In this document: piece after piece, positions 2,737 to 32,330 of the stretch
Layout of the letters: the number at the start of each line of letters is the position of its first letter
Position numbering within the stretch: the first letter of the stretch is position 1
Assembly (NCBI RefSeq): GCF_003918875.1
Contig: NW_025767511.1
Location: 186,001 to 250,000 of the forward strand
Source of the DNA: Haliotis rubra
Taxonomy: Eukaryota
Length of the DNA stretch: 64,000 bases
Reading direction: 5' to 3'
Made by a program: the position numbers and the translations under genes
Notes under the pieces: generated by a model
Told to the model about the DNA's origin: nothing
What the model saw: only the letters and a program-made list of their open reading frames with translations
Database searches by the model: none

Positions 2737-2874
2737 CTTTTCTGTCCAATTCTGCTTCAAATGAACCACTGACATCCATCTGTAAAAGAACTGAAGGAAA
2801 TGTTGATCAGACAATTGTTGTCTTTTCAAGTTACCAGAACATTACTTGTCTTGTGTGATTTCTTCAACAGAGCC

Positions 2875-4075
2875 ATGGCTGGAAGTGGACCTGGATTGAA
2901 AACCCCAGACCTGGTGAAGAAGGTCGCTTCTGCCAACTCCCAGTTTGGTCTGGACCTGTACAAGAAAGTCGCCTCAGACCTGAAGGATTCCAATGTGTTT
3001 CTGTCTCCCTTCAGCATCTCGGCAGCTCTGGCCATGACCCAGCTGGGAGCTCGAGGTGACACAGCAGCTCAGATGAACCAGGTCCTGAAGTGGACTGACC
3101 TCCAGGACTCTGTACATCCAGGGTTTGAAGACTATCTGCGTCTTCTGAAAACACATGGAGACTACGTACTTACAACAGCCAACCGCTTGTTTGTGAATGA
3201 TAAGGCCAAGATTCTGGATGAATTTCTACAGAAGACAAAAAGCATTATGGTGCTCAGGCTGTTCTATCTGACTTTGTGGGCAATGGAGCTGGAGAGGCGG
3301 AGAAGATCAACCAATGGGTGGAATCGGAGACCAACAGCAAGATAAAGGATCTGATCACCGGTGGAATCGATCCACTGACAGCTATGATCCTTGTTAATGC
3401 CATATACTTCAAAGGCAACTGGGCAGAGAAATTTGATCCGACAAGGACAGAGAAGGGCACATTTAAGGTGAAGCCTGGAGAGACGGTACAAGTTGATATG
3501 ATGCGGATGAAGAAGAAGTTCAAGTTTGGCCTAAATGATGAACTGAACTGTTCTGTGTTGGAACTGCCTTATGTAAAGGAGGACCTTAGCATGTTTTTCT
3601 TGTTGCCTTACAAGGATGATGGTTTGGGAGAACTGGAAAGCAAACTGAATCATGAATCTTTGACGGAAGCCTTAAAACGCGTGTTCACAAAACTACTGTT
3701 GACATCTCTATGCCCAGATTTGTATTGGAATCAAGTTTTGAGCTGAATGAAGTCCTGAAGTCACTTGGAATGTCTGATGCTTTTGACAAGCAGAAAGCCG
3801 ATCTGTCCGGAATTGATGGAACCCGGCTCCTGTACGTCTCCCAGGTGGTCCACAAGGCCTTCCTGGAAGTGAACGAGGAGGGAAGTGAAGCTGCCGCGGC
3901 CACAGCAGTTACGATCAAGAAAAGATCCCGGCCTATTATTGAGCCTTTCAAGGCAGATCATCCCTTCCTGTTCCTCATCCGTGACAACCGAGCCGATGTT
4001 GTGCTTTTCATGGGCAGACTTTTTCGTCCTCCGACAGCAGGCTCAGCTGGTGTTTCACAGAAATCTGAACTGTAG
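2875..4075 (+). CDS. Serpin copy 1; RCL TIKKR|SRP; C-terminal KSEL; two frameshifts (~3240, ~3680), so pseudogene or assembly error
   Basis: ORFs 2800-3345, 3276-3746 and 3710-4075 jointly give a full serpin (NVFLSPFSIS, LVNAIYFKGNW, EEGSEAAAAT, FKADHPFLFLIRD). An in-frame upstream ATG lies at 2800. Confidence 0.93.
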
Positions 4076-4824
4076 AGCTGTTGATATGATTCTGTTACAG
4101 ATCAATGTTACTGTTATTTTGACTCTCTCCATTGATTTAATGAAGTAGATTGTTTGACTGAAACTATTCATACAACTGAATATTAGTTGAAACCTATTGG
4201 AGGGCTTCTGTTCAATATCATAGGCTGTCATTATGAATGCAGATGACCAATCTTTGACTAACTTTGTTTTAATTTAAACTGTGATCATTCCTTATGGTAT
4301 TAAGGGGCATTTTGTGTTGATAGGAAGTCAAAAGGTTTGGAGAACTGGGAATGCATATCAACTTCTCATCCTTGTATTGAAAGCAGCATTTGAAATTCCT
4401 CGTATTGAGGAAGCATGGTTTAAAATTGGCGCTGATCCGTGGCTTATTGACAGTCTGGAAATCTGATAATTGTCTTCAAACAGTCGTTTCTGGGTCTGTT
4501 AGTTCCTATGGAATTATGATAATGACGATGAATACCAATGTCATAATTAACAATAAGATCCTATATATTGTACTACATTTGCATTGAGAAACATGGTTAA
4601 AGCTGCACATTAAAATTACCCAGGTCAAAGGGTCAGTTCACACTTGCCATTCCTCTGTGTTCCTGAACCTCAGATGCTGTTTACACAAACCTTACCTTGC
4701 CCGACTGTGACACAGAATTTGGCTTATTGCTGGGGATGTCATACCATACATATCTTGATACCAAGCTGCCTGTGAGGGGATAGAAATCACATCTCATCCT
4801 ACCGGGTACCTGTTTATGTCAATA

Positions 4825-5222
4825 TGAGTGAGTGAGCATGGTTTTATGCTGCCTTTAGCAATATTCCAGCAATATCACGGCAGGGGACACCAGCAATGGG
4901 CTTCACACATTGTACCCATGTAGGGAATCGAACCCGGGGTCTTTAGCATGACGAGCTAACGCTTTAACCACTATGCTACCCCACCGCCCCTTATGTCAAT
5001 ATGAACAGAGGATTGTTTTGATCAGACCCACTTGCCTAAGATTGGTTGGTTGGTTGGTGGCACTCAGCAATATTCCAGCTAAATGGCTGCGGTCTGTAAA
5101 TAATCAAGTCTGGACCAGACAAACCAGTGAGCAACAGCATGAGCATCGATCTACAATCAGTGAGCCTGACCACCCGGCAACGTTAGTCGCCACTACGTCA
5201 AGCATGGCTTGCTAAAGACCAA
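4825..5222 (-). mobile_element. SINE family A (4825-4990) followed by SINE family B fragment (5040-5222)
   Basis: Reverse-complement matches to the other copies in the window. Confidence 0.8.
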
Positions 5223-6842
5223 TTTGCTAAACAGCTCAGATGGTTGTGCACAGTTTAACAGGCTGTCAGAAGAAAGTACACATGCATTACTCAAGTCACA
5301 TGCTACCAAGACGACATGGCTCAAGGTCATGTTCTGCCTTTTGTGCCTCGTAAGGATGGGAAAGCCACATTAACTTGGTGCGCCTAGAAGGCAGCAAGAG
5401 TTGTATGATCCCCAGGGAGTTGAGATTGAAAATATGATGTGCCGTTGTGATGGACATCCAATGATCGAGGGAAAACAAATGTCAGTATAATAATAATATT
5501 TAAAGCAGGTCATGTCATATTGCAGGGGGTTAGAGCCCACCCACACATTGCATTTGCTGTTACAGACGTTTTCTGTACTCTGTGTTGAAGTATCTTCATG
5601 TTATTTGTCAGTGATCTGATACAATAGACTGTCAAGAATGTACTGCTGCTTTCAAGCCATGACTCTGAATAGTAACTAGCAAAACCTGTTTGATGTGCTA
5701 AAAATAAACATTGATATTCAAAACACCAACATTTTCTGGTTAAACTGGTTTGAGAGCAGGTTACTTGATCAGGCCAATAAATGAGGTAAATATTTTAAAC
5801 TTTAATGACATTTGGAGTCCTCAAAGATGCATGGGAAGACAAGGTCGCAGGTAACCTCTGCTTGAAGTAAGGCTGACTAAAGTGGTCTGTGTGGCCATGT
5901 TGCTGGGTTTTGTTTTGTTGGGTCATGCTTCAGTCAGTGCTTTGTCTATTCTGTGCAACCAGCAAGAGGTCTGTACATAGTATTCTTGACTGAGATTAAT
6001 CAATGTTCATTTTCAGAAATCCCGATTTTACTTGAGATGCTTTTCCTAAGTTGAGCCATTGATGCTATTCATCTGAATTTTGTGAATAGATGAACAAGAA
6101 GAATGTGTACACGAATGTCATTGTGGTCAGTTGGGTAGTCTGAGGGTTAAAGTGTTTGGTTCTTCTAATGGGTAAAAGTGCAAAGCCGTGTCAGGTGTCC
6201 CTATCATATTGCTGGAATATTGCTAAAAGTAGCATTAAAAAAACAACTCACTCACTCACTCACTAACTCAATTTCATAGTTCAACTATTATATTTTGTTT
6301 ACTAAAAACAGAATGATAAAAATGTCTATCTTTTCTCCTGTTACTCTTTTCCATACTCTTGATCTATCTTAACTGATTCTGAGCACTACTAAACAATTCC
6401 CAGTGGTAATAACATGCCCGAGTATAGTCATGTTCAAATTTCTGTCCAAGAAATGGAAAAATGTTTCGAAATAAAATGAAACTGACCAATTCCTAGTAAG
6501 TATGCCTTGGAAAATCAGTGATGTCTAAACTCTATAATCAAATGATAGATTTGGTTCATACCTCGCTATCATGTCTTTCTGATTCATTTGGCTCAAATAC
6601 TCCCCATTTTCCCCTTCCAGTTCCTAAACATCCTGAAGAATCATCTTTACTGAGAAGATCTGTCACAGTGCGGACTTCAGCTTTGCTTGTTAGGCCTTGA
6701 TCCTTTGCTGTCCAATTCTGCTTCAAATGAACCCACTGACATCCATCTGTAAAAGAACTGAAGAGAATGTTGATGAGACAATTTGCTGTCTTTTCAAGTT
6801 ACCAGAACGTTATTAGTCTTGTGTGATTTCTTCTACAGAACC

Positions 6843-8045
6843 ATGGCTGGAAGTGAAAGTGGACTGAAGACCCCAGACCTGGTGAAGAAGGTCGCTTCTG
6901 CCAATTCCCAGTTTGGTCTGGACCTGTACAAGAAGGTCGCCTTAGAACTGAAGGACTCCAATGTGTTTCTGTCTCCCTTCAGCATCTCGGCAGCTCTGGC
7001 CATGACCCAGCTGGGAGCTCGAGGTGACACAGCAGCTCAGATGAACCAGGTCCTGAAGTGGACTGACATCCAGGACTCCGTACATCCAGGATTTGAAGAC
7101 TATCTGCGTCTTCTGAAAACACAGGGAGACTACGTACTTACAACAGCCAACCGCTTGTTTGTGAATGATAAGGCCAAGATTCTGGATGAATTTCTACAGA
7201 AGACAGAGAAGCATTATGGTGCTCAGGCTGTCCTGTCTGACTTTGTGGGCAATGGAGCTGGAGAGGCGGAGAAGATCAACCAATGGGTGGAATCGGAGAC
7301 CAACAGCAAGATAAAGGATCTGATCACAGGTGGAATCGATCCACTCACAGCTATGATCCTTGTTAATGCCATATATTTCAAAGGCAACTGGGCAGAGAAA
7401 TTTGATCCGACAAGGACAGAGAAGGGCATGTTTAAGGTGAAGCCTGGAGAGACGGTACAAGTTGATATGATGCGGATGGAGAAGAAGTTCAGGTTTGGCC
7501 TAAATGATGAACTGAACTGTTCTGTGTTGGAACTGCCTTATGTAAAGGAGGACCTTAGCATGTTCTTCTTGTTGCCTTACAAGGATGATGGTTTGGGAGA
7601 ACTGGAAAGCAAACTGAATCATGTATCTTTGACGGAAGCCTTAAAACGTGTTGTTCACAAAACTACTGTTGACATCTCTATGCCCAGATTTGTATTGGAA
7701 TCAAGCTTTGAGATGAATGAAGTCCTGAAGTCGCTGGGAATGTCTGATGCTTTTGACAAGCAGAAAGCTGATCTGTCCGGAATTGATGGAACCCGGCTCC
7801 TGTACGTCTCCCAGGTGGTCCACAAGGCCTTCCTGGAAGTGAACGAGGAGGGAAGTGAAGCTGCTGCAGCCACAGCAGTTACGATCATGTTTTTATCCCT
7901 CCCTATCACTGAGCCTTTCAAGGCAGATCATCCCTTCCTGTTCCTCATCCGTGACAACCGAGCCGATGTTGTGCTCTTCATGGGCAGACTTGTTCGTCCT
8001 CCCACAGCAGGCTCAGCTGGTGTTTCACAGAAAACTGAACTGTAG
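6843..8045 (+). CDS. Serpin copy 2 (type A), intact; RCL TIMFL|SLP; C-terminal KTEL
   Basis: Uninterrupted ORF with all serpin motifs; accATGg Kozak context after the ttcttctacag acceptor. Confidence 0.96.
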   Translation: MAGSESGLKTPDLVKKVASANSQFGLDLYKKVALELKDSNVFLSPFSISAALAMTQLGARGDTAAQMNQVLKWTDIQDSVHPGFEDYLRLLKTQGDYVLTTANRLFVNDKAKILDEFLQKTEKHYGAQAVLSDFVGNGAGEAEKINQWVESETNSKIKDLITGGIDPLTAMILVNAIYFKGNWAEKFDPTRTEKGMFKVKPGETVQVDMMRMEKKFRFGLNDELNCSVLELPYVKEDLSMFFLLPYKDDGLGELESKLNHVSLTEALKRVVHKTTVDISMPRFVLESSFEMNEVLKSLGMSDAFDKQKADLSGIDGTRLLYVSQVVHKAFLEVNEEGSEAAAATAVTIMFLSLPITEPFKADHPFLFLIRDNRADVVLFMGRLVRPPTAGSAGVSQKTEL

Positions 8046-8372: not shown

Positions 8373-8732
8373 AATGTGGGGAATCAAACCAGGGTCTTCG
8401 GCATGACAAGCCAGTGGTTTAACCACTAGGCTACCCCACTGCCCCTGTGTGAGAATGAACAGAGGATTATTTTGATTAAACCCACTTGCCTTAGAAGCCA
8501 CCACATGTGTTACATGTGCTTCAGTGTGGGGAGGGACTGAACACCCAGAAAATGTCAGGAGTCAAACTGCCGAATGTGGTCATTGATCCAACAACTTCTC
8601 TAATGCAACTTGATTCACCTGATCTGTGAAGTATGCACTTTACACAGGTCAATGTGCTACCACATAATGACAACCCTACAGATGTATATCAACAGAAAAC
8701 TGTATATTTGCTTCACTTATGGTTCAATGGAA

Positions 8733-8738
8733 AATAAA
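8733..8738 (+). terminator. Candidate polyadenylation signal ~690 nt after the copy 2 stop, conserved in each internal unit
   Basis: AATAAA in ggaaaataaattta; the same motif occurs at ~12281, ~15826, ~20287 and ~23833. Confidence 0.4.
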
Positions 8739-10394
8739 TTTATTCAAATTAAAAAGTGCATCTTTCAATGCATATTCACAAAGTCATCTTTACTGAAAGG
8801 TGATGATTATTTTGTTTTACTCTATCACGGGTTTAACTGTTTGTTAGGATTTTCAAAGATGCTTGAGAAGAAAAACTTGGAGGTAACCTCGGCTTGACCT
8901 AAAGTTGACTGAAGTGAATTGGGTGTCCGTGTTGCTTGGTTCGGTGTTGTTGGGTCATGCTTCAGTCAGTGGTTTGCCTATCCCAGATTCTATTATGTTC
9001 CATGAGCAAGATGTCTGGAGATAATCATGATAATAGTCTCGGCTGACATTAATCAATGTTCATTTTCTGAAATCCACATTTGACTCAATGTTTTACGTAA
9101 GTTATGCTATTGCTGTGATTTATCTGAATTTTGTGAGTACCGGTAGATGAACAACAAGAGAGTGTACTGGAATGCCATCAAGGTCAGTTGGGTAGTCTTG
9201 TGCTTAAAGTGTTTGAGTCTTCTCATGGGTAAAACGTGCGAAGCCCGTGTCTGATGTCTCTGTGATATTGTCGGAAAATTGTTAAAAATGGCATAACAAA
9301 CCCAACTCACTCACAATCACACTCACTCACTCAAACTCACTTAAATCCACTCATTCACTCACTGCACTGATATTCCTTGAGTAAGTGAATGAGTAAGTGA
9401 GTTGGTTTCCAGCATTATCATGGCGGGGGACACCAGAAATGGGCTTCACACAAATTACCCATGTGGGGAATCGAACCCTGGCCCTCGGCATGATGAGTGG
9501 AAGCTTTACCCACTAGGCTACCCCACAGTCCCCTGGAGCTGGGCGTATCTGGGCGCTGAATTCAGTTAGATTACATGAGGTAGTTGATTAATATCTTAAA
9601 TATCAGAAGTGGATGCAGAATTTTGAGAAAGAGAATGGAAGTACAAGGACAGTATATCAGATAGATATTAGTAGTATCTGAAAAGGGCACTTCCGGGAAA
9701 TCCCCCACCCCTTGGTTCTGACAGTGAATTTGGGGGATGGATATGTCACAAATGGGAAGCTAAAAGCAAAATAGATTTTAGTACCATGAGGATATATGTT
9801 TGTGTAAAAGGTTTTAGCTGAGTCTACTTTCATAGCTCAGCTATTTTATTTTGTTTTCTACAAAAACAGAATGATAAAGATTTTCTACTGTTGCTTCTCC
9901 TTTTCCGTACTCTTGATCCATCTTAACTGATTGTGAGTGCTACCAAACAATACCCAGCACCACTAACATGCCCAGGTATAGTCATGTTCTTATCTATGTC
10001 TAAGAAATGGGAAAAAAAGGAAACAAAAATGACATGTAACTGCCCAATTATTAGTAAGCCAGCCTTTGAAAACCTGCAGTGTCTTAACTGAATTATCAAT
10101 CGTAGATTTGGTTCATACCTCTCTATCATCTCTTTCTGTATGATTTTGCTCAAATACTCCCCATTTTCCCCTTCCAGTTCCTAAACATCCTGAAGAATCA
10201 TCTTTACTGAGAAGATCTGTCACAGTATGGACTTCAGCTTTGCTTGTTAGGCCTTGATCCTTTGCTGTCCAATTCTGCTTCAAATGAACTGACATTCATC
10301 TGTAAAAGAACTGAAGAATATGTTGATCAGACAATTGTTGTCTTTTCAAGTTACCAGAACATTACTTGTCTTGTGTGATTTCTTCTACAGAACC

Positions 10395-11594
10395 ATGGCT
10401 GGAAGTGGAACTGGACTGAAGACCCCAGACCTGGTGAAGAAGGTCGCTTCTGCCAATTCCCAGTTTGGTCTGGACCTGTACAAGAAGGTCGCCTTAGACC
10501 TGAAGGACTCCAATGTGTTTCTGTCTCCCTTCAGCATCTCAGCAGCTCTGGCCATGACCCAGCTGGGAGCTCGAGGTGACACAGCAGCTCAGATGAACCA
10601 GGTCCTGAAGTGGACTGACATCCAGGACTCCGTACATCCAGGGTTTGAATACTATCTGCGTCTTCTGAAAACACAGGAAGACTACGTACTTACAACAGCC
10701 AACCGCTTGTTTGTGAATGAAAAGGCCAAGATTCTGGATGAATTTCTACAGAAGACAGAGAAGCATTATGGTGCTCAGGCTGTTCTGTCTGACTTTGTGG
10801 GCAATGGAGCTGGAGAGGCTGAGAAGATCAACCAATGGGTGGAATCGGAGACCAACAGCAAGATAAAGGATCTGATCACTGGTGGAATCGATCCACTCAC
10901 AGCTATGATCCTTGTTAATGCCATATACTTCAAAGGCAACTGGGCAGAGAAATTTGATCCGACAAGAACAGAGAAGGGCACATTTAAGGTGAAGCCTGGA
11001 GAGACAGTACAAGTTGATATGATGCGGATGAAGAAGAAGTTCAGGTTTGGCCTAAATGATGAACTGAACTGTTCTGTGTTGGAACTGCCTTATGTAAAGG
11101 AGGACCTTAGCATGTTCTTCTTGTTGCCTGACAAAGATGATGGTTTGGGTGAACTGGAAAGCAAACTGAATCATGTATCTTTGATGGAAGCCTTAAAACG
11201 TGTTCACAAAACTACTGTTAACATCTCTATGCCCAGATTTGTATTGGAATCAAGCTTTGAGATGAATGAAGTCCTGAAGTCACTTGGAATGTCTGATGCT
11301 TTTGATGAGCAGAAAGCCGATCTGTCCGGGATTGATGGAACCCGGCTCCTGTATGTCTCTAAGGTGGTCCACAAGGCCTTCCTGGAAGTCAACGAGGAGG
11401 GAAGTGAAGCTGCCGCGGCCACAGCAGTTATATTCATGAGCAACTCGCTCCCTATAATTGAGCCTTTCAAGGCAGATCATCCCTTCCTGTTCCTCATCCG
11501 TGACAACCGAGCCGATGTTGTGCTCTTCATGGGCAGACTTGTTCGTCCTCCCACAGCAGGCTCAGCTGGTGTTTCACAGAAAACTGAACTGTAG
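10395..11594 (+). CDS. Serpin copy 3 (type B), intact; RCL IFMSN|SLP; KTEL
   Basis: Uninterrupted ORF 10320-11594 including an upstream in-frame ATG; all serpin motifs present. Confidence 0.96.
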   Translation: MAGSGTGLKTPDLVKKVASANSQFGLDLYKKVALDLKDSNVFLSPFSISAALAMTQLGARGDTAAQMNQVLKWTDIQDSVHPGFEYYLRLLKTQEDYVLTTANRLFVNEKAKILDEFLQKTEKHYGAQAVLSDFVGNGAGEAEKINQWVESETNSKIKDLITGGIDPLTAMILVNAIYFKGNWAEKFDPTRTEKGTFKVKPGETVQVDMMRMKKKFRFGLNDELNCSVLELPYVKEDLSMFFLLPDKDDGLGELESKLNHVSLMEALKRVHKTTVNISMPRFVLESSFEMNEVLKSLGMSDAFDEQKADLSGIDGTRLLYVSKVVHKAFLEVNEEGSEAAAATAVIFMSNSLPIIEPFKADHPFLFLIRDNRADVVLFMGRLVRPPTAGSAGVSQKTEL

Positions 11595-13937
11595 AGCCGT
11601 TGATATGATTGTGAATTAGATCAACTTTAATTAAGTAGATTGTTTGACTGAAACTATTCATAGAGCTTCTGACAGTTTCCAGAAGTAGGCTAGTATATTG
11701 TTGTTGTTTCCATAGATGAAGGTTCAAGAGTTCAATAGGGATGTAGATACTGATGGTTATTGGTATTCTTTACATGTAACACCATATCCAACATTGAGGA
11801 CCATATCCATAGTTAGAGACCATATCCGTTGTTGAGGGCCATATGTAAATTTAAGGACCATATCCATTGTTGAGGACATATGTAATGTTAAGCACCATAT
11901 CCGTTGTTGAGGACCAAATGTAATGTGGGGAATCAAACCAGGGTCTTCGGCATGACAAGCCAATGGTTTAACCACTAGGCTACCCCACCGCCCCTGTGTG
12001 AGAATGAACAGAGGATTATTTTGATTAAACCCACTTGCCTTAGAAGCCACCACATGTGTTACATGTGCTTCAGTGTGGGGAGGGACTGAACACCCAGAAA
12101 ATGTCAGGAGTCAAACTGCCGAATGTGGTCATTGATCCATAAATCCTCTAATGCAACTTGATTCACCTGATCTGTGAAGTATGCACTTTACACAGGTCAA
12201 TGTGCTACCACATTATGACAACCCTACAGATGTATATCAACAGAAAACTGTATATTTGCTTCACGTATGGTTCAATGGAAAATAAATTTATTCGAGATTA
12301 AAAAGTGCATCTTTCAATGCATATTCACAATGTCATCTTTACTGAAAGGTGATGATTATTTTGTTTTACTCTATCACGGGTTTAACTGTTTGTTAGGATT
12401 TTCAAAGATGCTTGAGAAGAAAAACTTGGAGGTAACCTCGGCTTGACCTAAAGTTGACTGAAGAGAATTGGGTGTCCGTGTTGCTGGGTTCGGTGTTGTT
12501 GGGTCATGCTTCAGTCAGTGGTTTGCCTATCCCAGATTCTATTATGTTCCATGAGCAAGATGTCTGGAGATAATCATGATAATAATCTCGGCTGACATTA
12601 ATCAATGTTCATTTTCTGAAATCCACATTTGAGGTTTTCGTAAGTTATGCTATTGATGTAATTTATCTGAATTTTGTGAATAGATGAACAACAAGAAAGT
12701 GTACTGGAATGTCATCAAGGTCAGTTGGGTAGTCTTGTGGTTAAAGTGTTTGAGTCTTCTCATGGGTAAAATGTGCGAAGCCTGCGTCTGATGTCCCTGT
12801 GATATTGTCGGAAAATTATTAAAAGTGTAATAAAAAACCCAACTCACTCACAATCACACTCACTCACTCAAACTCACTTAAATTCACTCACTCACTCACT
12901 GCACTGATATTCCTTGAGTAAGTGAGTTGGTTTCCAGCAATATCATGGCGGGGGACACCAGAAATGGGCTTCACACAAATTACCCATGTGGGGAATCGAA
13001 CCCTGGCCCTCGGCATGATGAGTGGAAGCTTTACCCACTAGGCTACCCCACTGTCCCCTGGAGCGCTGGAGCGTATCTGGAGCACTGAATTCAGTAAGAT
13101 TACACAAGTAGTTGATTAATATCTTAAATATCAGAAGTGGATGCAGAATTTTGAGAAAGAGAATGGAAGTACAAGGACAGTATATCAGATAGATATTATC
13201 AAAATCACTGGTAGTATCTGAAAAGGGCACTTCCGGGAAATCCCCCATCCCTTGGTTCTGACAGTGAATTTGGGGGATGGATATGTAACAAATGGGAAGC
13301 TAAAAGCAAAATAGATTTTAGTACCATAAGGATATATGTTTGTGTAAAAGGTTTTAGCTGAGTCTACTTTCATAGCTCAGCTATTTTATTTTGTTTTCTA
13401 CAAAAACAGAATGATAAGGATTTTCTACTGTTGCTTCTCCTTGTCCAAACTCTTGATCCATCTTAACTGATTGTGAGTGCTACTAAACAATACCCAGCAC
13501 CACTAACATGTCCAGGTATAGTCATGTTCTTATCTATGTCCAAGAAATGGGAAAACAGGAAACAAAATGACATGTAACTGCCCAATTATTAGTAAGCATG
13601 CCTTCGAAAACTTGCTGTGTCTTAACTGAATTATCAATCGTAGATTTGGTTCATACCTCTCTATCATCTCTTTCTGTATGACTTTTCTCAAATACTCCCC
13701 ATTTTCCCCTTCCAGTTCCTAAACATCCTGAAGAATCATCTTTACTGAGAAGATCTGTCACAGTATGGACTTCAGCTTTGCTTGTTAGGCCTTGATCCTT
13801 TGCTGTCCAATTCAGCTTCAAATGAACTCACTCACATTCATCTGTAAAAAGAACTGAAGAATATGTTGATCAGACAATTGTTGTCTTTTCAAGTTACCAG
13901 AACATTACTTGTCTTGTGTGATTTCTTCTACAGAACC

Positions 13938-15138
13938 ATGGCTGGAAGTGGAACTGGACTGAAGACCCCAGACCTGGTGAAGAAGGTCGCTTCTGCCAAT
14001 TCCCAGTTTGGTCTGGACCTGTACAAGAAGGTCGCCTTAGAACTGAAGGACTCCAATGTGTTTCTGTCTCCCTTCAGCATCTCAGCAGCTCTGGCCATGA
14101 CCCAGCTGGGAGCTCGAGGGGACACAGCAGCTCAGATGAACCAGGTCCTGAAGTGGACTGACCTCCAGGACTCCGTACATCCAGGGTTTGAAGACTATCT
14201 CGTCTTCTGAAAACACAGGAGACTACGTACTTACAACAGCCAACCGCTTGTTTGTGAATGATAAGGCCAAGATTCTGGATGAATTTCTACAGAAGACAGA
14301 GAAGCATTATGGTGCTCAGGCTGTTCTGTCTGACTTTGTGGGCAATGGAGCTGGAGAGGCGGAGAAGATCAACCAATGGGTGGAATCGGAGACCAACAGC
14401 AAGATAAAGGATCTGATCACAGGTGGAATCGATCCACTCACAGCTATGATCCTTGTTAATGCCATATACTTCAAAGGCAACTGGGCAGAGAAATTTGATC
14501 CGACAAGGACAGAGAAGGGCATGTTTAAGGTGAAGCCTGGAGAGGCAGTACAAGTTGATATGATGCGGATGGAGAAGAAGTTCAGGTTTGGCCTAAATGA
14601 TGAACTGAACTGTTCTGTGTTGGAACTGCCTTATGTAAAGGAGGACCTTAGCATGTTCTTCTTGTTGCCTTACAAGGATGATGGTTTGGGAGAACTGGAA
14701 AGCAAACTGAATCATGTATCTTTGACGGAAGCCTTAAAACGCGTTGTTCACAAAACTACTGTTGACATCTCTATGCCCAGATTTGTATTGGAATCAAGCT
14801 TTGAGATGAATGAAGTCCTGAAGTCGCTGGGAATGTCTGATGCTTTTGACGAGCAGAAAGCTGATCTGTCCGGAATTGATGGAAGTCGCCTCCTGTATGT
14901 CTCTAAGGTGGTCCACAAGGCCTTCCTGGAAGTGAACGAGGAGGGAAGTGAAGCTGCTGCAGCCACAGCAGTTAGGATCATGACAAGATCGCTCCCTATA
15001 ATTGAGCCTTTCAAGGCAGATCATCCCTTCCTGTTCCTCATCCGTGACAACCGAGCCGATGTTGTGCTCTTCATGGGCAGACTTGTTCGTCCTCCCACAG
15101 CAGGCTCAGCTGGTGTTTCACAGAAAACTGAACTGTAG
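13938..15138 (+). CDS. Serpin copy 4 (type A); RCL RIMTR|SLP; KTEL; two single-G losses (~14200, ~14219)
   Basis: ORFs 13863-14210 and 14188-15138. The sequence reads tatctcgt where paralogues have tatctgcgt, and caggagac where they have cagggagac. Confidence 0.93.
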
Positions 15139-18688: not shown

Positions 18689-19065
18689 AGCCGTTGATAT
18701 GATTCTGAATTAGATCAACATTAATTAAGTAGATTGTTTGACTGAAACTATTCATAGAGCTTCTGACAGTTTCCAGAAGTAGGCTAGTATATTGTTGTTG
18801 TTTCCCTAGATGAAGGTACAAGAGTTCAATAGGGATGTAGATACTGATGGTTATTGGTATTCTTTACATGTAACACCATATCCAACATTGAGGACCATAT
18901 CCATAGTTAGAGACCATATCCGTTGTTGAGGGCCATATGTAAATTTAAGGACCATATACATTGTTGAGGACATATGTAATGTTAAGGACCATATCCATTG
19001 TTGAGGACCAAATGTAATGTGGGGAATCGAACCAGGGTCTTCGGCGTGACGAGCCAACGCTTTAA

Positions 19066-20009: not shown

Positions 20010-21944
20010 TTAACCATTAGGCTACCCCACTGCCCCCACTTGCCTTAGAAGCCACCACATGTGTTACATGTGCTTCAGTGTGGGGAGGGACTGAACACCC
20101 GGGTAAATGTCAGGAGTCAAACTGCCGACTGTGGTCATTGATCCATAACTCTTCTAATGCAACTTGATTCACATAATCTGTGAAGTATGCACTTTACACA
20201 GGTCAATGTGCTACCACATAATGACAACCCTACAGATGTATATCAACAGAAAACTGTATATTTGCTTCACACATGGTTCAATGGAAAATAAATTTATTCT
20301 GAGATTAAAAGTGCATCTTTCAATGCATATTCACAAAGTCATCTTTACTGAAAGGTGATGATTATTTTGTTTTACTCTATCACGGGTTTAACTGTTTGTT
20401 AGGATTTTCAAAGATGCTTGAGAAGAAAAACTTGGAGGTAACCTCGGCTTGACCTAAAGTTGACTGAAGTGAATTGGGTGTCCGTGTTGCTGGGTTCAGT
20501 GTTGTTGGGTCATGCTTCAGTCAGTGGTTTGCCTATCCCAGATTCTATTATGTTCCATGAGCAAGATGTCTGGAGATAATCATGATAATAATCTCGGCTG
20601 ACATTAATCAATGTTCATTTTCTGAAATCCACATTTGAGGTTTTCGTAAGTTATGCTATTGATGTAATTTATCTGAATTTTGTGAATAGATGAACAACAA
20701 GAAAGTGTACTGGAATGTCATCAAGGTCAGTTGGGTAGTCTTGTGGTTAAAGTGTTTGAGTCTTCTCATGGGTAAAATGTGCGAAGCCTGCGTCTGATGT
20801 CCCTGTGATATTGTCGGAAAATTGTTAAAAGTGTAATAAAAAACCCAACTCACTCACAATCACACTCACTCACTCAAACTCACTTAAATTCACTCACTCA
20901 CTCACTGCACTGATATTCCTTGAGTAAGTGAGTTGGTTTCCAGCAATATCATGGCGGGGGACACCAGAAATGGGCTTCACACAAATTACCCATGTGGGGA
21001 ATCGAACCCTGGCCCTCGGCATGATGAGTGGAAGCTTTACCCACTAGGCTACCCCACTGTCCCCTGGAGCGCTGGAGCGTATCTGGAGCACTGAATTCAG
21101 TAAGATTACACAAGTAGTTGATTAATATCTTAAATATCAGAAGTGGATGCAGAATTTTGAGAAAGAGAATGGAAGTACAAGGACAGTATATCAGATAGAT
21201 ATTATCAAAATCACTGGTAGTATCTGAAAAGGGCACTTCCGGGAAATCCCCCATCCCTTGGTTCTGACAGTGAATTTGGGGGATGGATATGTCACAAATG
21301 GGAAGCTAAAAGCAAAATAGATTTTAGTACCATAAGGATATATGTTTGTGTAAAAGGTTTTAGCTGAGTCTACTTTCATAGCTCAGCTATTTTATTTTGT
21401 TTTCTACAAAAACAGAATGATAAGGATTTTCTACTGTTGCTTCTCCTTGTCCAAACTCTTGATCCATCTTAACTGATTGTGAGTGCTACTAAACAATACC
21501 CAGCACCACTAACATGTCCAGGTATAGTCATGTTCTTATCTATGTCCAAGAAATGGGAAAAACAGGAAACAAAAATGACATGTAACTGCCCAATTATTAG
21601 TAAGCATGCCTTCGAAAACTTGCTGTGTCTTAACTGAATTATCAATCGTAGATTTGGTTCATACCTCTCTATCATCTCTTTCTGTATGACTTTTCTCAAA
21701 TACTCCCCATTTTCCCCTTCCAGTTCCTAAACATCCTGAAGAATCATCTTTACTGAGAAGATCTGTCACAGTATGGACTTCAGCTTTGCTTGTTAGGCCT
21801 TGATCCTTTGCTGTCCAATTCAGCTTCAAATGAACTCACTCACATTCATCTGTAAAAGAACTGAAGAATATGTTGATCAGACAATTGTTGTCTTTTCAAG
21901 TTACCAGAACATTACTTGTCTTGTGTGATTTCTTCTACAGAACC

Positions 21945-23147
21945 ATGGCTGGAAGTGGAACTGGACTGAAGACCCCAGACCTGGTGAAGAAGGTCGCTTC
22001 TGCCAATTCCCAGTTTGGTCTGGACCTGTACAAGAAGGTCGCCTTAGAACTGAAGGACTCCAATGTGTTTCTGTCTCCCTTCAGCATCTCGGCAGCTCTG
22101 GCCATGACCCAGCTGGGAGCTCGAGGTGACACAGCAGCTCAGATGAACCAGGTCCTGAAGTGGACTGACATCCAGGACTCCGTACATCCAGGGTTTGAAG
22201 ACTATCTGCGTCTTCTGAAAACACAGGGAGACTACGTACTTACAACAGCCAACCGCTTGTTTGTGAATGATAAGGCCAAGATTCTGGATGAATTTCTACA
22301 GAAGACAGAGAAGCATTATGGTGCTCAGGCTGTTCTGTCTGACTTTGTGGGCAATGGAGCTGGAGAGGCGGAGAAGATCAACCAATGGGTGGAATCGGAG
22401 ACCAACAGCAAGATAAAGGATCTGATCACAGGTGGAATCGATCCACTGACAGCTATGATCCTTGTTAATGCCATATACTTCAAAGGCAACTGGGCAGAGA
22501 AATTCGATCCGACAAGGACAGAGAAGGGCATGTTTAAGGTGAAGCCTGGAGAGACGGTACAAGTTGATATGATGCGGATGGAGAAGAAGTTCAGGTTTGG
22601 CCTAAATGATGAACTGAACTGTTCTGTGTTGGAACTGCCTTATGTAAAGGAGGACCTTAGCATGTTCTTCTTGTTGCCTTACAAGGATGATGGTTTGGGA
22701 GAACTGGAAAGCAAACTGAATCATGTATCTTTGACGGAAGCCTTAAAACGCGTTGTTCACAAAACTACTGTTGACATCTCTATGCCCAGATTTGTATTGG
22801 AATCAAGCTTTGAGATGAATGAAGTCCTGAAGTCGCTGGGAATGTCTGATGCTTTTGACGAGCAGAAAGCTGATCTGTCCGGAATTGATGGAAGTCGCCT
22901 CCTGTATGTCTCTAAGGTGGTCCACAAGGCCTTCCTGGAAGTGAACGAGGAGGGAAGTGAAGCTGCTGCAGCCACAGCAGTTACATTCATGTTTTTATCC
23001 CTCCCTATCTCTGAGCCTTTCAAGGCAGATCATCCCTTCCTGTTCCTCATCCGTGACAACCGAGCCGATGTTGTGCTCTTCATGGGCAGACTTGTTCGTC
23101 CTCCCACAGCAGGCTCAGCTGGTGTTTCACAGAAAACTGAACTGTAG
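21945..23147 (+). CDS. Serpin copy 6 (type A), intact; RCL TFMFL|SLP; KTEL
   Basis: Uninterrupted ORF 21870-23147. Confidence 0.96.
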   Translation: MAGSGTGLKTPDLVKKVASANSQFGLDLYKKVALELKDSNVFLSPFSISAALAMTQLGARGDTAAQMNQVLKWTDIQDSVHPGFEDYLRLLKTQGDYVLTTANRLFVNDKAKILDEFLQKTEKHYGAQAVLSDFVGNGAGEAEKINQWVESETNSKIKDLITGGIDPLTAMILVNAIYFKGNWAEKFDPTRTEKGMFKVKPGETVQVDMMRMEKKFRFGLNDELNCSVLELPYVKEDLSMFFLLPYKDDGLGELESKLNHVSLTEALKRVVHKTTVDISMPRFVLESSFEMNEVLKSLGMSDAFDEQKADLSGIDGSRLLYVSKVVHKAFLEVNEEGSEAAAATAVTFMFLSLPISEPFKADHPFLFLIRDNRADVVLFMGRLVRPPTAGSAGVSQKTEL

Positions 23148-25491
23148 AGCTGTTGATATGATTCTGAATTAGATCAACATTAATTAAGTAGATTGTTTGA
23201 CTGAAACTATTCAAAGAGCTGCTGACAGTTTCCGGAAGTAGGCTAGTATATTGTTATTGTTTCCCTAGATGAAGGTATAAGAGTTCAGTAGGGATGTAGA
23301 TACTGATGGTTATTGGTATTCTTTACGTGTAACACCATATCCGACATTGAGGACCATATCCATAGTTAGAGACCATATCCGTTGTTGAGGGCCATATGTA
23401 AATTTAAGGACCATATCCATTGTTGAGGACATATGTAATGTTAAGCACCATATCCGTTGTTGAGGACCAAATGTAATGTGGGGAATCAAACCAGGGTCTT
23501 CGGCATGACAAGCCAATGGTTTAACCACTAGGCTATCCCACCGCCCCTGTGTGAGAATGAACAGAGGATTATTTTGATTAAACCCACTTGCCTTAGAAGC
23601 CACCACATGTGTTACATGTGCTTCAGTGTGGGAGGGACTGAACACCAGAAAATGTCAGGAGTCAAACTGCCGAATGTGGTCATTGATCCAACAACTTCTC
23701 TAATGCAACTTGATTCACCTGATCTGTGAAGTATGCACTTTACACAGGTCAATGTGCTACCACATAATGACAACCCTACAGATGTATATCAACAGAAAAC
23801 TGTATATTTGCTTCACGTATGGTTCAATGGAAAATAAATTTATTCGAGATTAAAAGTGCATCTTTCAATGCATATTCACAAAGTCATCTTTACTGAAAGG
23901 TGATGATTATTTTGTTTTACTCTATCACGGGTTTAACTGTTTGTTAGGATTTTCAAAGATGCTTGAGAAGAAAAACTTGGAGGTAACCTCGGCTTGACCT
24001 AAAGTTGACTGAAGAGAATTGGGTGTCCGTGTTGCTGGGTTGGGTGTTGTTGGGTCATGCTTCAGTCAGTGGTTTGCCTATCCCAGATTCTATTATGTTC
24101 CATGAGCAAGATGTCTGGAGATAATCATGATAATAATCTCGGCTGACATTAATCAATGTTCATTTTCTGAAATCCACATTTGACTCGATGTTTTACGTAA
24201 GTTATGCTATTGATGTGATTTATCTGAATTTTGTGAGTAGATGAACAACAAGAGAGTGTACTGGAATGCCATCAAGGTCAGTTGGGTAGTCTTGTGCTTA
24301 AAGTGTTTGAGTCTTTTCATGGGTAAAACGTGCGAAGCCCGTGTCTGATGTCTCTGTGATATTGTCGGAAAATTGTTAAAAATGGCATAAAAAACCCAAC
24401 TCACTCACAATCACACTCACTCACTCAAACTCACTTAAATCCACTCATTCACTCACTGCACTGATATTCCTTGAGTAAGTGAATGAGTAAGTGAGTTGGT
24501 TTCCAGCATTATCATGGCGGGGGACACCAGAAATGGGCTTCACACAAATTACCCATGTGGGGAATCGAACCCTGGCCCTCGGCATGATGAGTGGAAGCTT
24601 TACCCACTAGGCTACCCCACTGTCCCCTGGAGCGCTGGAGCGTATCTGGAGCGCTGAATTCAGTTAGATTACGCAGGTAGTTGATTAATATCTTAAATAT
24701 CAGAAGTGGATGCAGAATTTTGAGAAAGAGAATGGAAGTACAAGGACAGTATATCAGATAAATATTAGTAGTATCTGAAAAGGGCACTTCCGGGAAATCC
24801 CCCATCCCTTGGTTCTGACAGTGAATTTGGGGGATGGATATGTCACAAATGGGAAGCTAAAAGCAAAATAGATTTTAGTACCATGAGGATATATGTTTGT
24901 GTAAAAGGTTTTAGCTGAGTCTACTTTCATAGCTCAGCTATTTTATTTTGTTTTCTACAAAAACAGAATGATAAGGATTTTCTACTGTTGCTTCTCCTTT
25001 TCCGTACTCTTGATCCATCTTAACTGATTGTGAGTGCTACCAAACAATACCCAGCACCACTAACATGCCCAGGTATAGTCATGTTCTTATCTATGTCTAA
25101 GAAATGGGAAAAAAAGGAAACAAAAATGACATGTAACTGCCCAATTATTAGTAAGCATGCCTTTGAAAACCTGCAGTGTCTTAACTGAATTATCAATCGT
25201 AGATTTGGTTCATACCTCTCTATCATCTCTTTCTGTATGATTTTGCTCAAATACTCCCCATTTTCCCCTTCCAGTTCCTAAACATCCTGAAGAATCATCT
25301 TTACTGAGAAGATCTGTCACAGTATGGACTTCAGCTTTGCTTGTTAGGCCTTGATCCTTTGCTGTCCAATTCTGCTTCAAATGAACTGACATTCATCTGT
25401 AAAAGAACTGAAGAATATGTTGATCAGACAATTGTTGTCTTTTCAAGTTACCAGAACATTACTTGTCTTGTGTGATTTCTTCTACAGAACC

Positions 25492-26694
25492 ATGGCTGGA
25501 AGTGGAACTGGACTGAAGACCCCAGACCTGGTGAAGAAGGTCGCTTCTGCCAATTCCCAGTTTGGTCTGGACCTGTACAAGAAAGTCGCCTTAGACCTGA
25601 AGGACTCCAATGTGTTTCTGTCTCCCTTCAGCATCTCGGCAGCTCTGGCCATGACCCAGCTGGGAGCTCGAGGTGACACAGCAGCTCAGATGAACCAGGT
25701 CCTGAAGTGGACTGACATCCAGGACTCCGTACATCCAGGGTTTGAAGACTATCTGCGTCTTCTGAAAACACACAGGGAGACTACGATACTTACAACAGCC
25801 AACCGCTTGTTTGTGAATGATAAGGCCAAGATTCTGGATGAATTTCTACAGAAGACAGAGAAGCATTATGGTGCTCAGGCTGTTCTGTCTGACTTTGTGG
25901 GCAATGGAGCTGGAGAGGCGGAGAAGATCAACCAATGGGTGGAATCGGAGACCAACAGCAAGATAAAGGATCTGATCACAGGTGGAATCGATCCACTGAC
26001 AGCTATGATCCTTGTTAATGCCATATACTTCAAAGGCAACTGGGCAGAGAAATTCGATCCGACAAGGACAGAGAAGGGCACATTTAAGGTGAAGCCTGGA
26101 GAGACCGTACAAGTTGATATGATGCGGATGAAGAAGAAGTTCAAGTTTGGCCTAAATGATGAACTGAACTGTTCTGTGTTGGAACTGCCTTATGTAAAGG
26201 AGGACCTTAGCATGTTCTTCTTGTTGCCTGACAAAGATGATGGTTTGGGAGAACTGGAAAGCAAACTGAATCATGAATCTTTGACGGAAGCCTTAAAACG
26301 TGTTCACAAAACTACTGTTGACATCTCTATGCCCAGATTTGTGCTGGAATCAAGCTTTGAGCTGAATGAAGTCCTGAAGTCGCTGGGAATGTCTGATGCT
26401 TTTGATGAGCAGAAAGCCGATCTGTCCGGAATTGATGGAACCCGGCTCCTGTACATCTCCCAGGTGGTCCACAAGGCCTTCCTGGAAGTGAACGAGGAGG
26501 GAAGTGAAGCTGCTGCAGCCACAGCAGTTAGGATCATGACAAGATCGCTCCCTATAATTGAGCCTTTCAAGGCAGATCATCCCTTCCTGTTCCTCATCCG
26601 TGACAACCGAGCCGATGTTGTGCTCTTCATGGGCAGACTTGTTCGTCCTCCCACAGCAGGCTCAGCTGGTGTTTCACAGAAAACTGAACTGTAG
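25492..26694 (+). CDS. Serpin copy 7 (type B); RCL RIMTR|SLP; KTEL; compensating +2/+1 indels at ~25770-25787
   Basis: ORF 25417-26694 is open. KTHRETTILTT replaces KTQGDYVLTT because of a local frame excursion. Confidence 0.95.
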   Translation: MAGSGTGLKTPDLVKKVASANSQFGLDLYKKVALDLKDSNVFLSPFSISAALAMTQLGARGDTAAQMNQVLKWTDIQDSVHPGFEDYLRLLKTHRETTILTTANRLFVNDKAKILDEFLQKTEKHYGAQAVLSDFVGNGAGEAEKINQWVESETNSKIKDLITGGIDPLTAMILVNAIYFKGNWAEKFDPTRTEKGTFKVKPGETVQVDMMRMKKKFKFGLNDELNCSVLELPYVKEDLSMFFLLPDKDDGLGELESKLNHESLTEALKRVHKTTVDISMPRFVLESSFELNEVLKSLGMSDAFDEQKADLSGIDGTRLLYISQVVHKAFLEVNEEGSEAAAATAVRIMTRSLPIIEPFKADHPFLFLIRDNRADVVLFMGRLVRPPTAGSAGVSQKTEL

Positions 26695-27320
26695 AGCTGT
26701 TGATATGATTCTGTTTCAGAGCAATGTTACTGTTATTGTGACCATCTCCATCAATTAAATGCATTATATTATGATATTTAATAGCAGTACGTTGTTTGAT
26801 TGAAAGTATCCATAAACTTCTCTCAGTTACCAAAGTAGACTAGTTTATTTTCTATTTTTTAGTGGTTCTGTTTTAACCTTAGTATAGATTGATCTGCCTT
26901 TGATTTCACAAATGTGGGACAATAATGGCCCCTTGTTCCATGCTTTAGTATTGTTTATAAAAGAAATCCACTTTTTCACTGCATTTTTCACATTCATGGA
27001 AACATGAACAATCCTTAGGACTTTTAAACTCATGTCCTGAATATTTTTAGATATTAACTTTCCATTAAATGTTTTCACAGTGGCTGACCGTTACAGATTT
27101 GCTTCGGCTTTATGTGTCTATGGTGGTTATACAGTATATTCTCAAGGTTAAATATATTCTAAATATGTTCTGAAAAATTGACGTGTGTAGAGATGGCACA
27201 TATTTTCATATAATGCATAAAATAAGACTGTCATAAAACATGTATTGCTTTAATCATGTCAATAAATAGCTGTGATACACTATATTTTGAATACATTTCT
27301 TTCTTAGTATAACAGGAATT

Positions 27321-28225: not shown

Positions 28226-28241
28226 CCCCCACAAATTTAAG

Positions 28242-29848: not shown

Positions 29849-29931
29849 GCAGGAGCTCTTATGTGAACATCATTATCATTATTAATTATTACCACTACAA
29901 ATTTATATTTTATACTTATATTTTCCTAATA

Positions 29932-30510: not shown

Positions 30511-30917
30511 TATATGGATCCTAATATATTGCTTGTAATGGTAATAATTAATAATGAATTTTTCCATGAATTATCATGGAGAAATAATTCATAGAAAAAT
30601 TCATTTTTAATTATTACGCCATGATACCATTCTGGTACCACCACAAAGCAACACTTCTAGCTTTCATAGCACACATGAATTAGTACAGGACGACATCTTA
30701 TTTTGACTCATGTGGCCATATTTACACGACTACTAATCCACACTTTCAGCATTTAATCACAATGGACATTTATGAAGTGCCTGTATCCAAACACTTGTGC
30801 ATGCTCAGGGTGCAAACACATATAGCTAGAACGTTAGCAGTCACATGACTTCTTATCCCACCAGGTACCCATTCACTGCTGGGTGAACAGAGGCAATTAT
30901 GAGCAAATCACTTGCCT

Positions 30918-31098
30918 GGACTAACGGGATGAGGTGGTCAGGTTCGCTGACTTGGTTGACATATGCTGTTGTATCCCAACTGTGTAGATCAATGCTTATG
31001 ATGTTCATCACTGGATTTTCTAGTCCAAACTCCACTATTTACAGACCGCCACAATACAGCTGGAATATTGCTGGGCATGGCGTTAAAGAATAAATAAA
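30918..31098 (+). mobile_element. SINE family B, 5'-truncated
   Basis: gactaacgggat...gctggaatattgctgggcatggcgttaaag followed by an (aata)n tail. Confidence 0.8.
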
Positions 31099-31169
31099 CA
31101 TTGGGGAACAAGGTTCCATTTTTTGTATCCTTACCAAAAGTTATTTGTTTTTGTAGAGGTGGTGGGAAG

Positions 31170-32330
31170 ATGTCGTGCAGCAAGGTGTCCCAGCTTGCTG
31201 CAGCCGATGCCAAGTTCAGCATTGACCTCTACAGAGCACTGTCCAGTTCCATGTCTGACCAGAATCTGTTCCTGTCCCCCTACAGTGTCCTGTCTGTCAT
31301 GGCCATGGCATACATAGGTGCCCGAGGAACTACAGCCTCAGAGATGTTGCAGGCCTTAAGACTGACGGAAATATCAGAAACCATCCACATCGCTTTTCAG
31401 GAGTACCTGGCAGTTATGAGCAGCAAAGCAGAGGGCTGTGATTTAGCTTCAGCTAATAAATTATATGTGAGAAAGGACAAGCAACTGTGCTCGGAGTTTT
31501 CCAAAAAGGTGGCACAGCATTTTGGAGCTGAGACTGACTCATGTGACTTCATCGGAAACCCAGAATCAGAGTGTGCCAGGATCAATGCCTGGGTGGCCAA
31601 ACAGACCCACGATAGGATCCAAGGTGTCATCTCACCGCTTTCTCTCACTAAAGACACATCAATGATTTTAGTAAATGCCATCTATTTTAAAGGAAAATGG
31701 GAAAATGTTTTTGATAAGGGCTTAACTGAAAAGGGCTCTTTCACAGTCTCCTCTTCAAAGAAGGTCGCGGTTGATATGATGAACACTGTGGACACGTTTG
31801 GGTACAGTGAGATTAAAGACTTGGACTGCACGGCACTGGAACTACCCTATGTAGGGGACAGACTCAGCATGGTGATCCTCCTTCCCAGAAAATCAAATGG
31901 TTTAAGTTCCCTGGAACAGAACCTCAAGCCTCATCATCTCCAGGTCCAGTTCACTGGTAATTCATGGAATGAGGTTGATGTGTCACTTCCAAGGTTTAAG
32001 ATGGAGTCCAGTTTTGAGCTTGCTGATGTCCTGTCCATGTTAGGGATGTGTACTGCTTTTGACCCCGTGGAGGCCAACTTTTCTGGGATTGATCCATCAG
32101 GGCTGTTGACCTTGTCCAGGGTCGTCCACAAGACCTTTGTGGAGGTCAATGAGGAGGGTACAGAGGCAGCAGCATGCACCATGATGGACTGTGTGGATGG
32201 GTTGGTGATACAGGAGAAGCATGTCTTCAGGGCTGATCATCCGTTTATATTTTTCATCCGAGACAGACGAAGTGAGATGATCCTTTTTCTTGGGAGGATT
32301 GTGAATCCAGAAGGCCTGGAAACATGCTAA
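31170..32330 (+). CDS. Divergent intracellular (clade-B-like) serpin with uninterrupted CDS; RCL GTEAAACTMMDCVD|GL
   Basis: Intact ORF with NLFLSPYS, LVNAIYFKGKW, EEGTEAAA and FRADHPFIFFIRD. Acceptor tttttgtag ends at 31156 and ATG is at 31170. No signal peptide or KDEL-like end. Confidence 0.96.
   Translation: MSCSKVSQLAAADAKFSIDLYRALSSSMSDQNLFLSPYSVLSVMAMAYIGARGTTASEMLQALRLTEISETIHIAFQEYLAVMSSKAEGCDLASANKLYVRKDKQLCSEFSKKVAQHFGAETDSCDFIGNPESECARINAWVAKQTHDRIQGVISPLSLTKDTSMILVNAIYFKGKWENVFDKGLTEKGSFTVSSSKKVAVDMMNTVDTFGYSEIKDLDCTALELPYVGDRLSMVILLPRKSNGLSSLEQNLKPHHLQVQFTGNSWNEVDVSLPRFKMESSFELADVLSMLGMCTAFDPVEANFSGIDPSGLLTLSRVVHKTFVEVNEEGTEAAACTMMDCVDGLVIQEKHVFRADHPFIFFIRDRRSEMILFLGRIVNPEGLETC

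Follow-up and report, generated by a model that had tools for sequence, protein, structure and literature searches.

A putative non-coding first exon shared by six whole-coding serpin cassettes in the abalone Haliotis rubra

In a 64,000-nucleotide (nt) stretch of DNA of the blacklip abalone, Haliotis rubra (the window; assembly GCA_003918875.1, contig QXJH01000789.1, window position 1 being record position 186001), seven copies of a serpin reading frame and an eighth serpin lie on the forward strand, each beginning just behind what looks like a splice acceptor. This arrangement raises the question whether the array is a row of separate genes or whether one upstream leader exon is spliced to alternative, complete serpin exons, as an original prediction made from the sequence alone had proposed. 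Our analysis favors a mixed model, to which we assign a probability of about 0.55, in which cassettes are reached by splicing from a shared exon 1 and are also transcribed co-linearly with the DNA. Overall, the shared-leader idea is partly supported, and the sections of evidence that bear on it, namely the anatomy of the array, the annotated splices and the assembled RNA, are taken in turn below.

The products of the array are 400-amino-acid (aa) serpins of the intracellular type that carry a full-length, clade-B-like serpin domain (PF00079). This domain is present on every listed match of the copy 6 product, the best named matches of which are "leukocyte elastase inhibitor-like" or serpin B6/B9, and the N terminus of the product from the main ATG, MAGSGTGLKTPDLVKK, is not hydrophobic. 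The copy 2 coding cassette (6843 to 8045, + strand) is intact, encodes 400 aa, and has the reactive-center loop TIMFLSLPIT. Copies 3 to 7 (10395 to 26694, +) have their coding sequences (CDSs) at 10395 to 11594, 13938 to 15138, 17486 to 18688, 21945 to 23147 and 25492 to 26694. Copies 2, 3, 6 and 7 are intact, and copies 1, 4 and 5 are frameshifted in the current assembly, with copy 5 marked LOW QUALITY by RefSeq. Units 3 to 7, here called type-B, are 95 to 98% identical across their entire 3.55 kb, and the copy 2 unit is 92% identical from 6272 onward. Variable sites among copies 2 to 7 peak at the reactive-center-loop window (15 of 60 columns; 0 in the next 120 columns).

Is the boundary in front of each start codon a real splice site? 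The pattern GATTTCTTCWACAGARCCATG matched seven times with 0 mismatches, at 2857, 6825, 10377, 13920, 17468, 21927 and 25474, and had 0 matches in 100 shuffles; GATTTCTTCWACAG/ARCC-ATG (a slash marks a splice boundary here and below) occurs exactly seven times in the window and not at all in shuffles. In each match a pyrimidine-rich tract and a CAG precede by 4 nt the start codon of a serpin open reading frame (ORF), which places the AG/exon boundaries at 2870/2871, 6838/6839, 10390/10391, 13933/13934, 17481/17482, 21940/21941 and 25487/25488. Since the units are near-identical copies of one another, the seven matches amount to one observation within the genome. Across species, the tract and the AG 4 nt before the ATG are kept in H. 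asinina, in copies a, b and c of H. rufescens and in two cassettes of H. cracherodii. H. rufescens b and c and the second H. cracherodii cassette have only the last 20 to 45 nt before the AG in common with copy a, a conserved remnant of the kind that a functional 3' splice site leaves. The eighth serpin (31144 to 32330, +) has a different but equally good acceptor of its own: its tract (...tttgtttttgtag) is followed by 13 nt and the ATG at 31170 (...ttatttgtttttgtag/aggtggtgggaag ATG), the boundary TTTTTGTAG/AGG falling at 31156/31157, and this TTTGTAG acceptor is kept in its H. asinina and H. cracherodii orthologues. An acceptor just before the ATG of all eight serpins, as first proposed, is therefore borne out by the exact matches, the shuffles and the cross-species conservation. 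Judged by this conservation, the motif is a true 3' splice site of an intron in the 5' untranslated region (UTR). The first intron, with RefSeq using the acceptor, lies in the 5' UTR, and translation starts in exon 2.

Where, then, would this intron begin? The candidate is a block at 5568 to 5785 (+), between copies 1 and 2, which is unique, holds a putative transcription start region with a TATA-like CTAAAAATAAAC (about 5696 to 5707) kept in H. asinina, and ends in the donor ATGAG/GTAAAT at 5785/5786. It is followed by the start of the ancestral intron 1 (5786 to 5968, +), within which RefSeq has two further annotated donors, TTGAA/GTAAGG at 5866/5867 and AAGAG/GTCTGT at 5968/5969. Positions 5568 to 5988 are about 80% identical to an H. 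asinina segment (locus L003, 8570 to 8998) that lies 1.0 to 1.4 kb upstream of the only array-type serpin of that species, and the donor GAG/GTAAAT is retained there. Within the window and the 4.2 kb that precede it, positions 5226 to 5820 have no second copy. The five type-B spacers contain a 75%-identical homologue that begins only at 5821 (weakly from about 5800), 15 to 36 nt past the 5785 donor. Because this homology starts just past the donor, copies 3 to 7 were duplicated without exon 1, and what could pass for a leader relic in their spacers is the start of the ancestral intron. The homologue (8853 to 9334, and also at 12402, 15947, 20408 and 23953; +) has neither exon 1 nor the donors at 5785 and 5866, and keeps GAT/GTCTGG at 9011/9012 and a GTAAGT at 9097 to 9102.

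At the other end of the array, the DNA that follows copy 7 (26725 to 27317) aligns collinearly with what lies 3' of the H. asinina gene, where the sequence then continues to the orthologue of the eighth serpin. With exon 1 at the left end and the ancestral 3' flank at the right end, copies 2 to 7 occupy the place of one ancestral gene. They have a single candidate promoter and first exon among them, the type-B units being without the block, and this does not extend to copy 1. Taken together, the sequence comparisons strongly support an anatomy of one exon 1 followed by six promoter-less whole-CDS cassettes. The original prediction had the spacers without an obvious promoter or first exon and one upstream promoter or leader exon outside the window. 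The first claim stands for the five type-B spacers and fails between copies 1 and 2, where the spacer contains the conserved unique block; the second stands in that one exon-1 block is found for copies 2 to 7, but the block is inside the window, between copies 1 and 2. No exon-1 homologue was found within 10 kb upstream in H. rufescens or H. cracherodii, so the architecture should not be generalized to these two species.

A leader-encoded signal peptide, which had also been suggested, is not supported. In-frame ATGs at 5781, 5805 and 5925 reflect a longest-ORF rule, and the corresponding frames are not conserved in H. asinina, where they are shifted by 1-nt indels (including the frame ending at 5968) and where the 5866 donor is deleted.

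On the RefSeq annotation, more than one cassette would use exon 1. Three RefSeq products were reproduced exactly: P0125 (402 aa) by joining 5781 to 5785 to 10391 to 11594 (donor ATGAG/GTAAAT), P0001 (XP_046551365.1, isoform X2, 415 aa) by joining 5925 to 5968 to 10391 to 11594 (donor AAGAG/GTCTGT), and P0126 (XP_046551368.1, 422 aa) by joining 5805 to 5866 to 6839 to 8045 (donor TTGAA/GTAAGG). These three can only arise via splicing of the exon-1 region to the proximal acceptor of copy 2 (6825 to 6845, +; AG/A at 6838/6839, 4 nt before the ATG at 6843) or of copy 3 (10377 to 10397, +; 10390/10391). Copies 3 to 7 do not differ at all over the first 96 to 150 nt past the acceptor. A join written as "exon 1 to copy 3" may therefore be to any type-B cassette, and a reach of exon 1 beyond copy 3 would be compatible with the same models. 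The claim that the leader chooses among seven or eight serpin exons can accordingly be kept in part: RefSeq joins it to copy 2 and to a type-B cassette, whereas copy 1, being upstream of the leader, is out of its reach. No link from exon 1 to the eighth serpin was found, although no direct test was made.

Isoform naming in related species fits a shared 5' exon. In H. rufescens the names X1 to X6 span three separate coding cassettes, and in H. cracherodii X1 to X3 span two, the names implying one gene each. For H. rufescens isoform X2 (P0129), no GT..AG splice reproduced the product and only in-register non-canonical joins did so. In H. rubra, RefSeq treats copies 5 to 7 as separate genes, and copies 3, 6 and 7 give 424/425-aa products that start inside the "intron". 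A search with residues 1 to 80 of P0001 found no leader-bearing transcript-derived protein fragments; the clusters searched consist of NCBI and UniRef members, without transcript assemblies.

What does the RNA say about the acceptor? The RNA evidence consists of assembled contigs of public runs, of which X1, X2 and X4 were taken as RNA by guess and X5 is a DNA run. The three RNA-like runs have total contig sizes of 42 to 57 Mb, longest contigs of 13 to 20 kb and strongly sample-dependent depth, features that, with the zero depth over 5701 to 6098 given below, suggest RNA. Type-B contigs pass unspliced through the proximal acceptor in each of them (X4, 9929 to 11175; X2, 10177 to 10419; X1, 10368 to 10720). 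Genomic DNA contamination is unlikely to be behind these contigs, given that the single-copy segment 5701 to 6098 has a depth of 0 in the three RNA-like runs and is covered by the DNA run X5. Unspliced, apparently autonomous transcripts clearly exist, and they were what the original prediction had named as evidence against itself; part of the RNA is of this kind. Given these contigs and the RefSeq starts inside the "intron", the proximal acceptor must sometimes go unused, and the cassettes have at least some autonomy. Independent transcription of cassettes is likewise indicated by co-linear contigs through both type-B acceptors and by the separate RefSeq genes for copies 5 to 7. In favor of the original prediction, run X2 has a depth of 0 over the copy 2 intron (6298 to 6695), compared to about 125 over the copy 2 CDS.

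The second of the two type-B acceptors, CCCCATTTTCCCCTTCCAG/TTCC (10159 to 10186, +; AG ending at 10177), lies 213 nt upstream of the proximal one and looks stronger. It is exact in copies 2 to 7, where the AG ends at 6620, 10177, 13715, 17268, 21723 and 25274. Identity between H. rubra and H. rufescens rises from about 35 to 60% to 88 to 95% at 10147 and stays high up to the ATG, as conserved as the CDS. The conserved block between the acceptors (10178 to 10390, +; 213 nt) may be an alternative 5' UTR or an internal promoter region, and it holds an upstream in-frame ATG at 10320 (MLIRQ...) from which the 424/425-aa RefSeq products originate. The 25-codon MLIRQ... ORF is not supported as a conserved coding extension: all 7 of 7 substitutions relative to H. 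rufescens are non-synonymous, the frame is out of register in copy 2, and it is broken in H. rufescens b and c. Neither alternative N-terminal extension (MLIRQ... or MLQSV...) is conserved as coding sequence. The existence of a second conserved acceptor counts against an exclusive shared leader.

These observations could be accommodated by cassettes that are fully autonomous, each with a promoter in the conserved 250 to 500 nt upstream of its ATG, with exon 1 serving copy 2 only, the acceptor of copies 3 to 7 reduced to a rarely or never used relic, and the exon-1-to-copy-3 models being mapping artefacts. The contigs unbroken through the acceptor, the 424/425-aa products of copies 3, 6 and 7 from the upstream ATG, the separate genes annotated for copies 5 to 7, and the conservation of the upstream block across four species all speak for such autonomy, and a mapping artefact is made easier by the sequence directly past the acceptor, where copy 2 and type-B differ at only 2 of 108 nt (copy 2 GAAAGT at 6856 to 6861; common variant GGAACT). 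Yet conservation begins exactly at a textbook polypyrimidine-CAG (10160 to 10177), which suggests an exon boundary over a promoter. H. rufescens b and c lack the upstream block and have nevertheless kept the acceptor and intact reading frames, and two different RefSeq donors are both joined to type-B sequence. The ends of the X2 contigs and the steps in depth, set out below, also indicate other RNA paths that join at both AGs. We therefore regard full autonomy as a possible but distinctly less probable explanation.

The evidence for additional RNA paths comes from run X2. Its contigs 9909 to 10206 and 10177 to 10419 overlap by exactly 30 nt, a signature from which we infer a second RNA path whose last differing base is 10176, the A of the distal AG, and which would join at its G, 10177. 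The contig end at 10419 implies the like for 10389, the A of the proximal AG, with a join at the G of that AG; this signal is weaker, and a variant at 10420 may account for it instead. The contig-end arithmetic was calibrated on a known paralogue variant at 8598, and the reference copies have no difference at 10176 or 10389. Depth across the two acceptors steps from about 17 to 47 to about 190. These joins are read from contig ends and are not observed junctions. A candidate for the leader end that these joins call for, a G after a non-A base, is ATGG/GTAAAA, which is present at 9228 or 6171 and is conserved in all spacers.

A leader end unlike the local donors is also what spliced-leader trans-splicing would produce, in which a polycistronic transcript of the array, as in a nematode operon, receives a leader at each acceptor. 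A tandem array on one strand with an acceptor 4 nt ahead of every ATG, and the read-through RNA in the spacers, would suit such a mechanism, but a cis exon 1 with a conserved donor is present and is used in RefSeq models, and no leader sequence was recovered. Moreover, spliced-leader trans-splicing has not been demonstrated in molluscs (PMC3795323), which counts against this explanation. We consider it very improbable.

The mixed model, as we would reconstruct it, starts from an ancestral gene whose promoter was followed by a short exon 1 without coding sequence, about 1 kb of intron and a single whole-CDS serpin exon, the single-gene form that H. asinina still has. Tandem amplification in H. 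rubra of the segment from 15 to 36 nt past the exon-1 donor to about 0.8 kb past the stop then left one promoter and exon 1 (5568 to 5785) followed by six cassettes (copies 2 to 7), each with most of intron 1, two acceptors, a complete CDS and its own poly(A) signal, and with the reactive-center loop as the main difference. By one route, transcripts of the exon-1 region would be spliced to the copy 2 acceptor, or would read through and skip at least one cassette to reach a downstream acceptor. By the other, transcripts co-linear with the DNA would start in, or read through, the conserved 250 to 500 nt upstream of each ATG.

The cassettes also have poly(A) signals of their own. AATAAA lies 686 to 688 nt past the stop in copies 2, 3, 4 and 6 and 1599 nt past it, behind an insertion, in copy 5; the type-B 3' UTR signal is at 8733 to 8738 (also 12281, 15826, 20287 and 23833; +), and X2 RNA depth drops beyond it. 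Other candidate signals follow copies 1 and 7, so the candidate poly(A) signal per unit that had been noted at the outset is confirmed, as AATAAA in copies 2 to 6. After the stop, X2 depth over the spacer falls through about 70, 25, 8 and 1.5, a profile that resembles a 3' UTR of about 700 nt with read-through beyond it and that counts against the original prediction.

RNA beyond the poly(A) signal might instead mark first exons private to each copy, with a promoter and exon in every type-B spacer and candidate donors at GAT/GTCTGG (9011/9012), AC/GTAAGT (9096/9097) and ATGG/GTAAAA (9228/9229). RNA contigs do cover 8599 to 9112, GTAAGT is found in all type-B spacers and not in the spacer between copies 1 and 2, and ATGG/GTAAAA is found in all six spacers with a GG end that fits the inferred leader end. 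However, the counterpart of the segment in the ancestral gene is intron 1, rather than exon 1 or the promoter. The contigs over the segment extend without a break from the 3' UTR before it, at declining depth, they run unspliced through the 9011 and 9096 donors, and depth at 9084 to 9282 is only 1 to 8. Private first exons therefore appear unlikely.

Several points weigh against the mixed model itself. The RefSeq junction at copy 3 might have been placed there in error and belong to copy 2, in an individual with the common GGAACT variant in that copy, given that only 2 of the first 108 nt differ. For copies 5 to 7, RefSeq has no model of a CDS initiated in exon 1. Some of the H. rufescens cross-copy models need non-canonical joins, and the merged isoforms may partly be paralogue artefacts. 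The status of X1, X2 and X4 as RNA is guessed, none of the joints listed for the RNA contigs is a GT..AG joint starting in the exon-1 region, and depth over 5701 to 6098 is 0. Finally, the X2 contig ends demand a leader that ends in G after a non-A base, which 0 of the 3 RefSeq donors fit, pointing to another leader in use. Assemblers can clip a first exon of about 60 nt from contigs, and since so short an exon can drop out, missing exon-1 coverage is weak evidence. More generally, with 96 to 150 identical nt past the acceptor and a copy content that varies between individuals, short-read annotation, including the RefSeq isoforms, cannot place a leader on a given cassette.

In its stronger form, the shared-exon reading would have one promoter and one non-coding exon drive the choice among six complete serpin exons with different bait loops, with read-through of poly(A) sites setting which inhibitor is made. 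It would amount to a whole-protein version of the insect alternative-loop system, of recent origin by duplication of promoter-less cassettes within one transcription unit. We hold this form only tentatively and think it rather less probable than its negation.

Variation in the array itself was also evident. A contig of the DNA run X5 joins the copy 2 intron (6426 to 6545) in register to the copy 3 intron (10103 to 10364), with the joint at 6545/10103, and RNA contigs hold combinations of variants found in no reference copy. Either polymorphism or gene conversion between individuals, or mis-assembly of part of the array, would account for this.

Copy 1 (2875 to 4075, +), frameshifted and upstream of exon 1, has a short interspersed element between its two acceptors (2566 to 2736) and a long interspersed element (LINE) further upstream, with a LINE-type reverse-transcriptase ORF at 20 to 1600 (+). 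Fragments homologous to the start of intron 1 lie past the LINE, about 460 to 570 nt before the window start (locus L001), and the copy 1 intron thus seems to have been split by insertion. The first 76 nt after the stops of copies 1 and 7 (4076 to 4151 and 26695 to 26770) are 85% alike and unlike the 3' flank of copies 2 to 6, so that copy 1 apparently derives from a terminal-type copy.

Among related serpins, P0007 and P0008 of H. rufescens and H. cracherodii (locus L004, 17221 to 18387, and locus L002, near 28405) have the basic loop VVRKRKRVRED. Overall identity to the array serpins is only 64%, with the first 105 residues nearly identical, a pattern that points to gene conversion over the 5' third of the coding exon. 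Elsewhere in the window, an ORF at 61868 to 63106 considered as a further serpin proved not to be one. Long tandem repeats with periods of 35, 34 and 44 nt occupy 33007 to 33715, 47664 to 48905 and 52561 to 53350, some of them overlapping ORFs of 250 to 326 aa; the region from 47.6 to 50 kb has a strong skew of C over G, and a run of 140 N at 41892 to 42031 represents an assembly gap or a masked stretch.

A search of the available literature on abalone serpin gene structure found nothing relevant, and the arrangement is best placed by comparison with better-known systems. Insect serpin genes, including Manduca sexta serpin-1, contain mutually exclusive reactive-center-loop exons. Like serpin-1, the abalone array would combine one promoter with alternative downstream cassettes whose loop variation yields inhibitors of differing specificity from one locus. 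In the insect genes, however, only the loop exon (about 40 to 50 aa) alternates inside a shared multi-exon CDS, whereas each abalone cassette comes with its own poly(A) signal and a whole 400-aa CDS, only non-coding sequence is shared, and the cassettes are apparently also transcribed alone. UGT1A and the clustered protocadherins, in which variable first exons each have their own promoter and the coding 3' exons are shared, resemble the array in joining a tandem set of alternative exons to a shared part of the gene, but the topology is reversed: the abalone locus would share a 5' non-coding exon and vary the terminal whole-coding exon.

Closer in the placement of the intron are the human clade B serpins, in which the first intron lies in the 5' UTR and translation begins in exon 2 (PMC1308813). 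The abalone products are likewise predicted to be of the intracellular type, with a first intron in the 5' UTR, as in vertebrate clade B (ov-)serpins. The vertebrate genes have 7 to 8 exons and the abalone CDS a single one; the likeness lies in having an intron in the 5' UTR and is not shown to be one of orthologous position. A shared non-coding 5' exon or read-through tandem transcripts are also known from the VAChT/ChAT cholinergic locus and some olfactory-receptor clusters. As at VAChT/ChAT-type loci, an upstream abalone exon would pass over a complete coding unit and be spliced to the first acceptor of an intronless coding exon further downstream. Unlike at those loci, the downstream units arose recently by duplication and no longer have an exon 1 of their own, and exon-1 sharing would for that reason follow from the structure and not from occasional read-through. 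The whole-CDS cassette arrangement is new as a variant of these known alternative-loop, 5'-UTR-intron and shared-leader systems.

If exon 1 does serve several cassettes, the H. rubra locus would be a tandem array turning into a single gene with alternative terminal exons. Such a locus would represent an evolutionary intermediate toward the alternative bait-loop exons of insects, and it would make the protease inhibitor that is produced depend on acceptor choice and on read-through at poly(A) sites.

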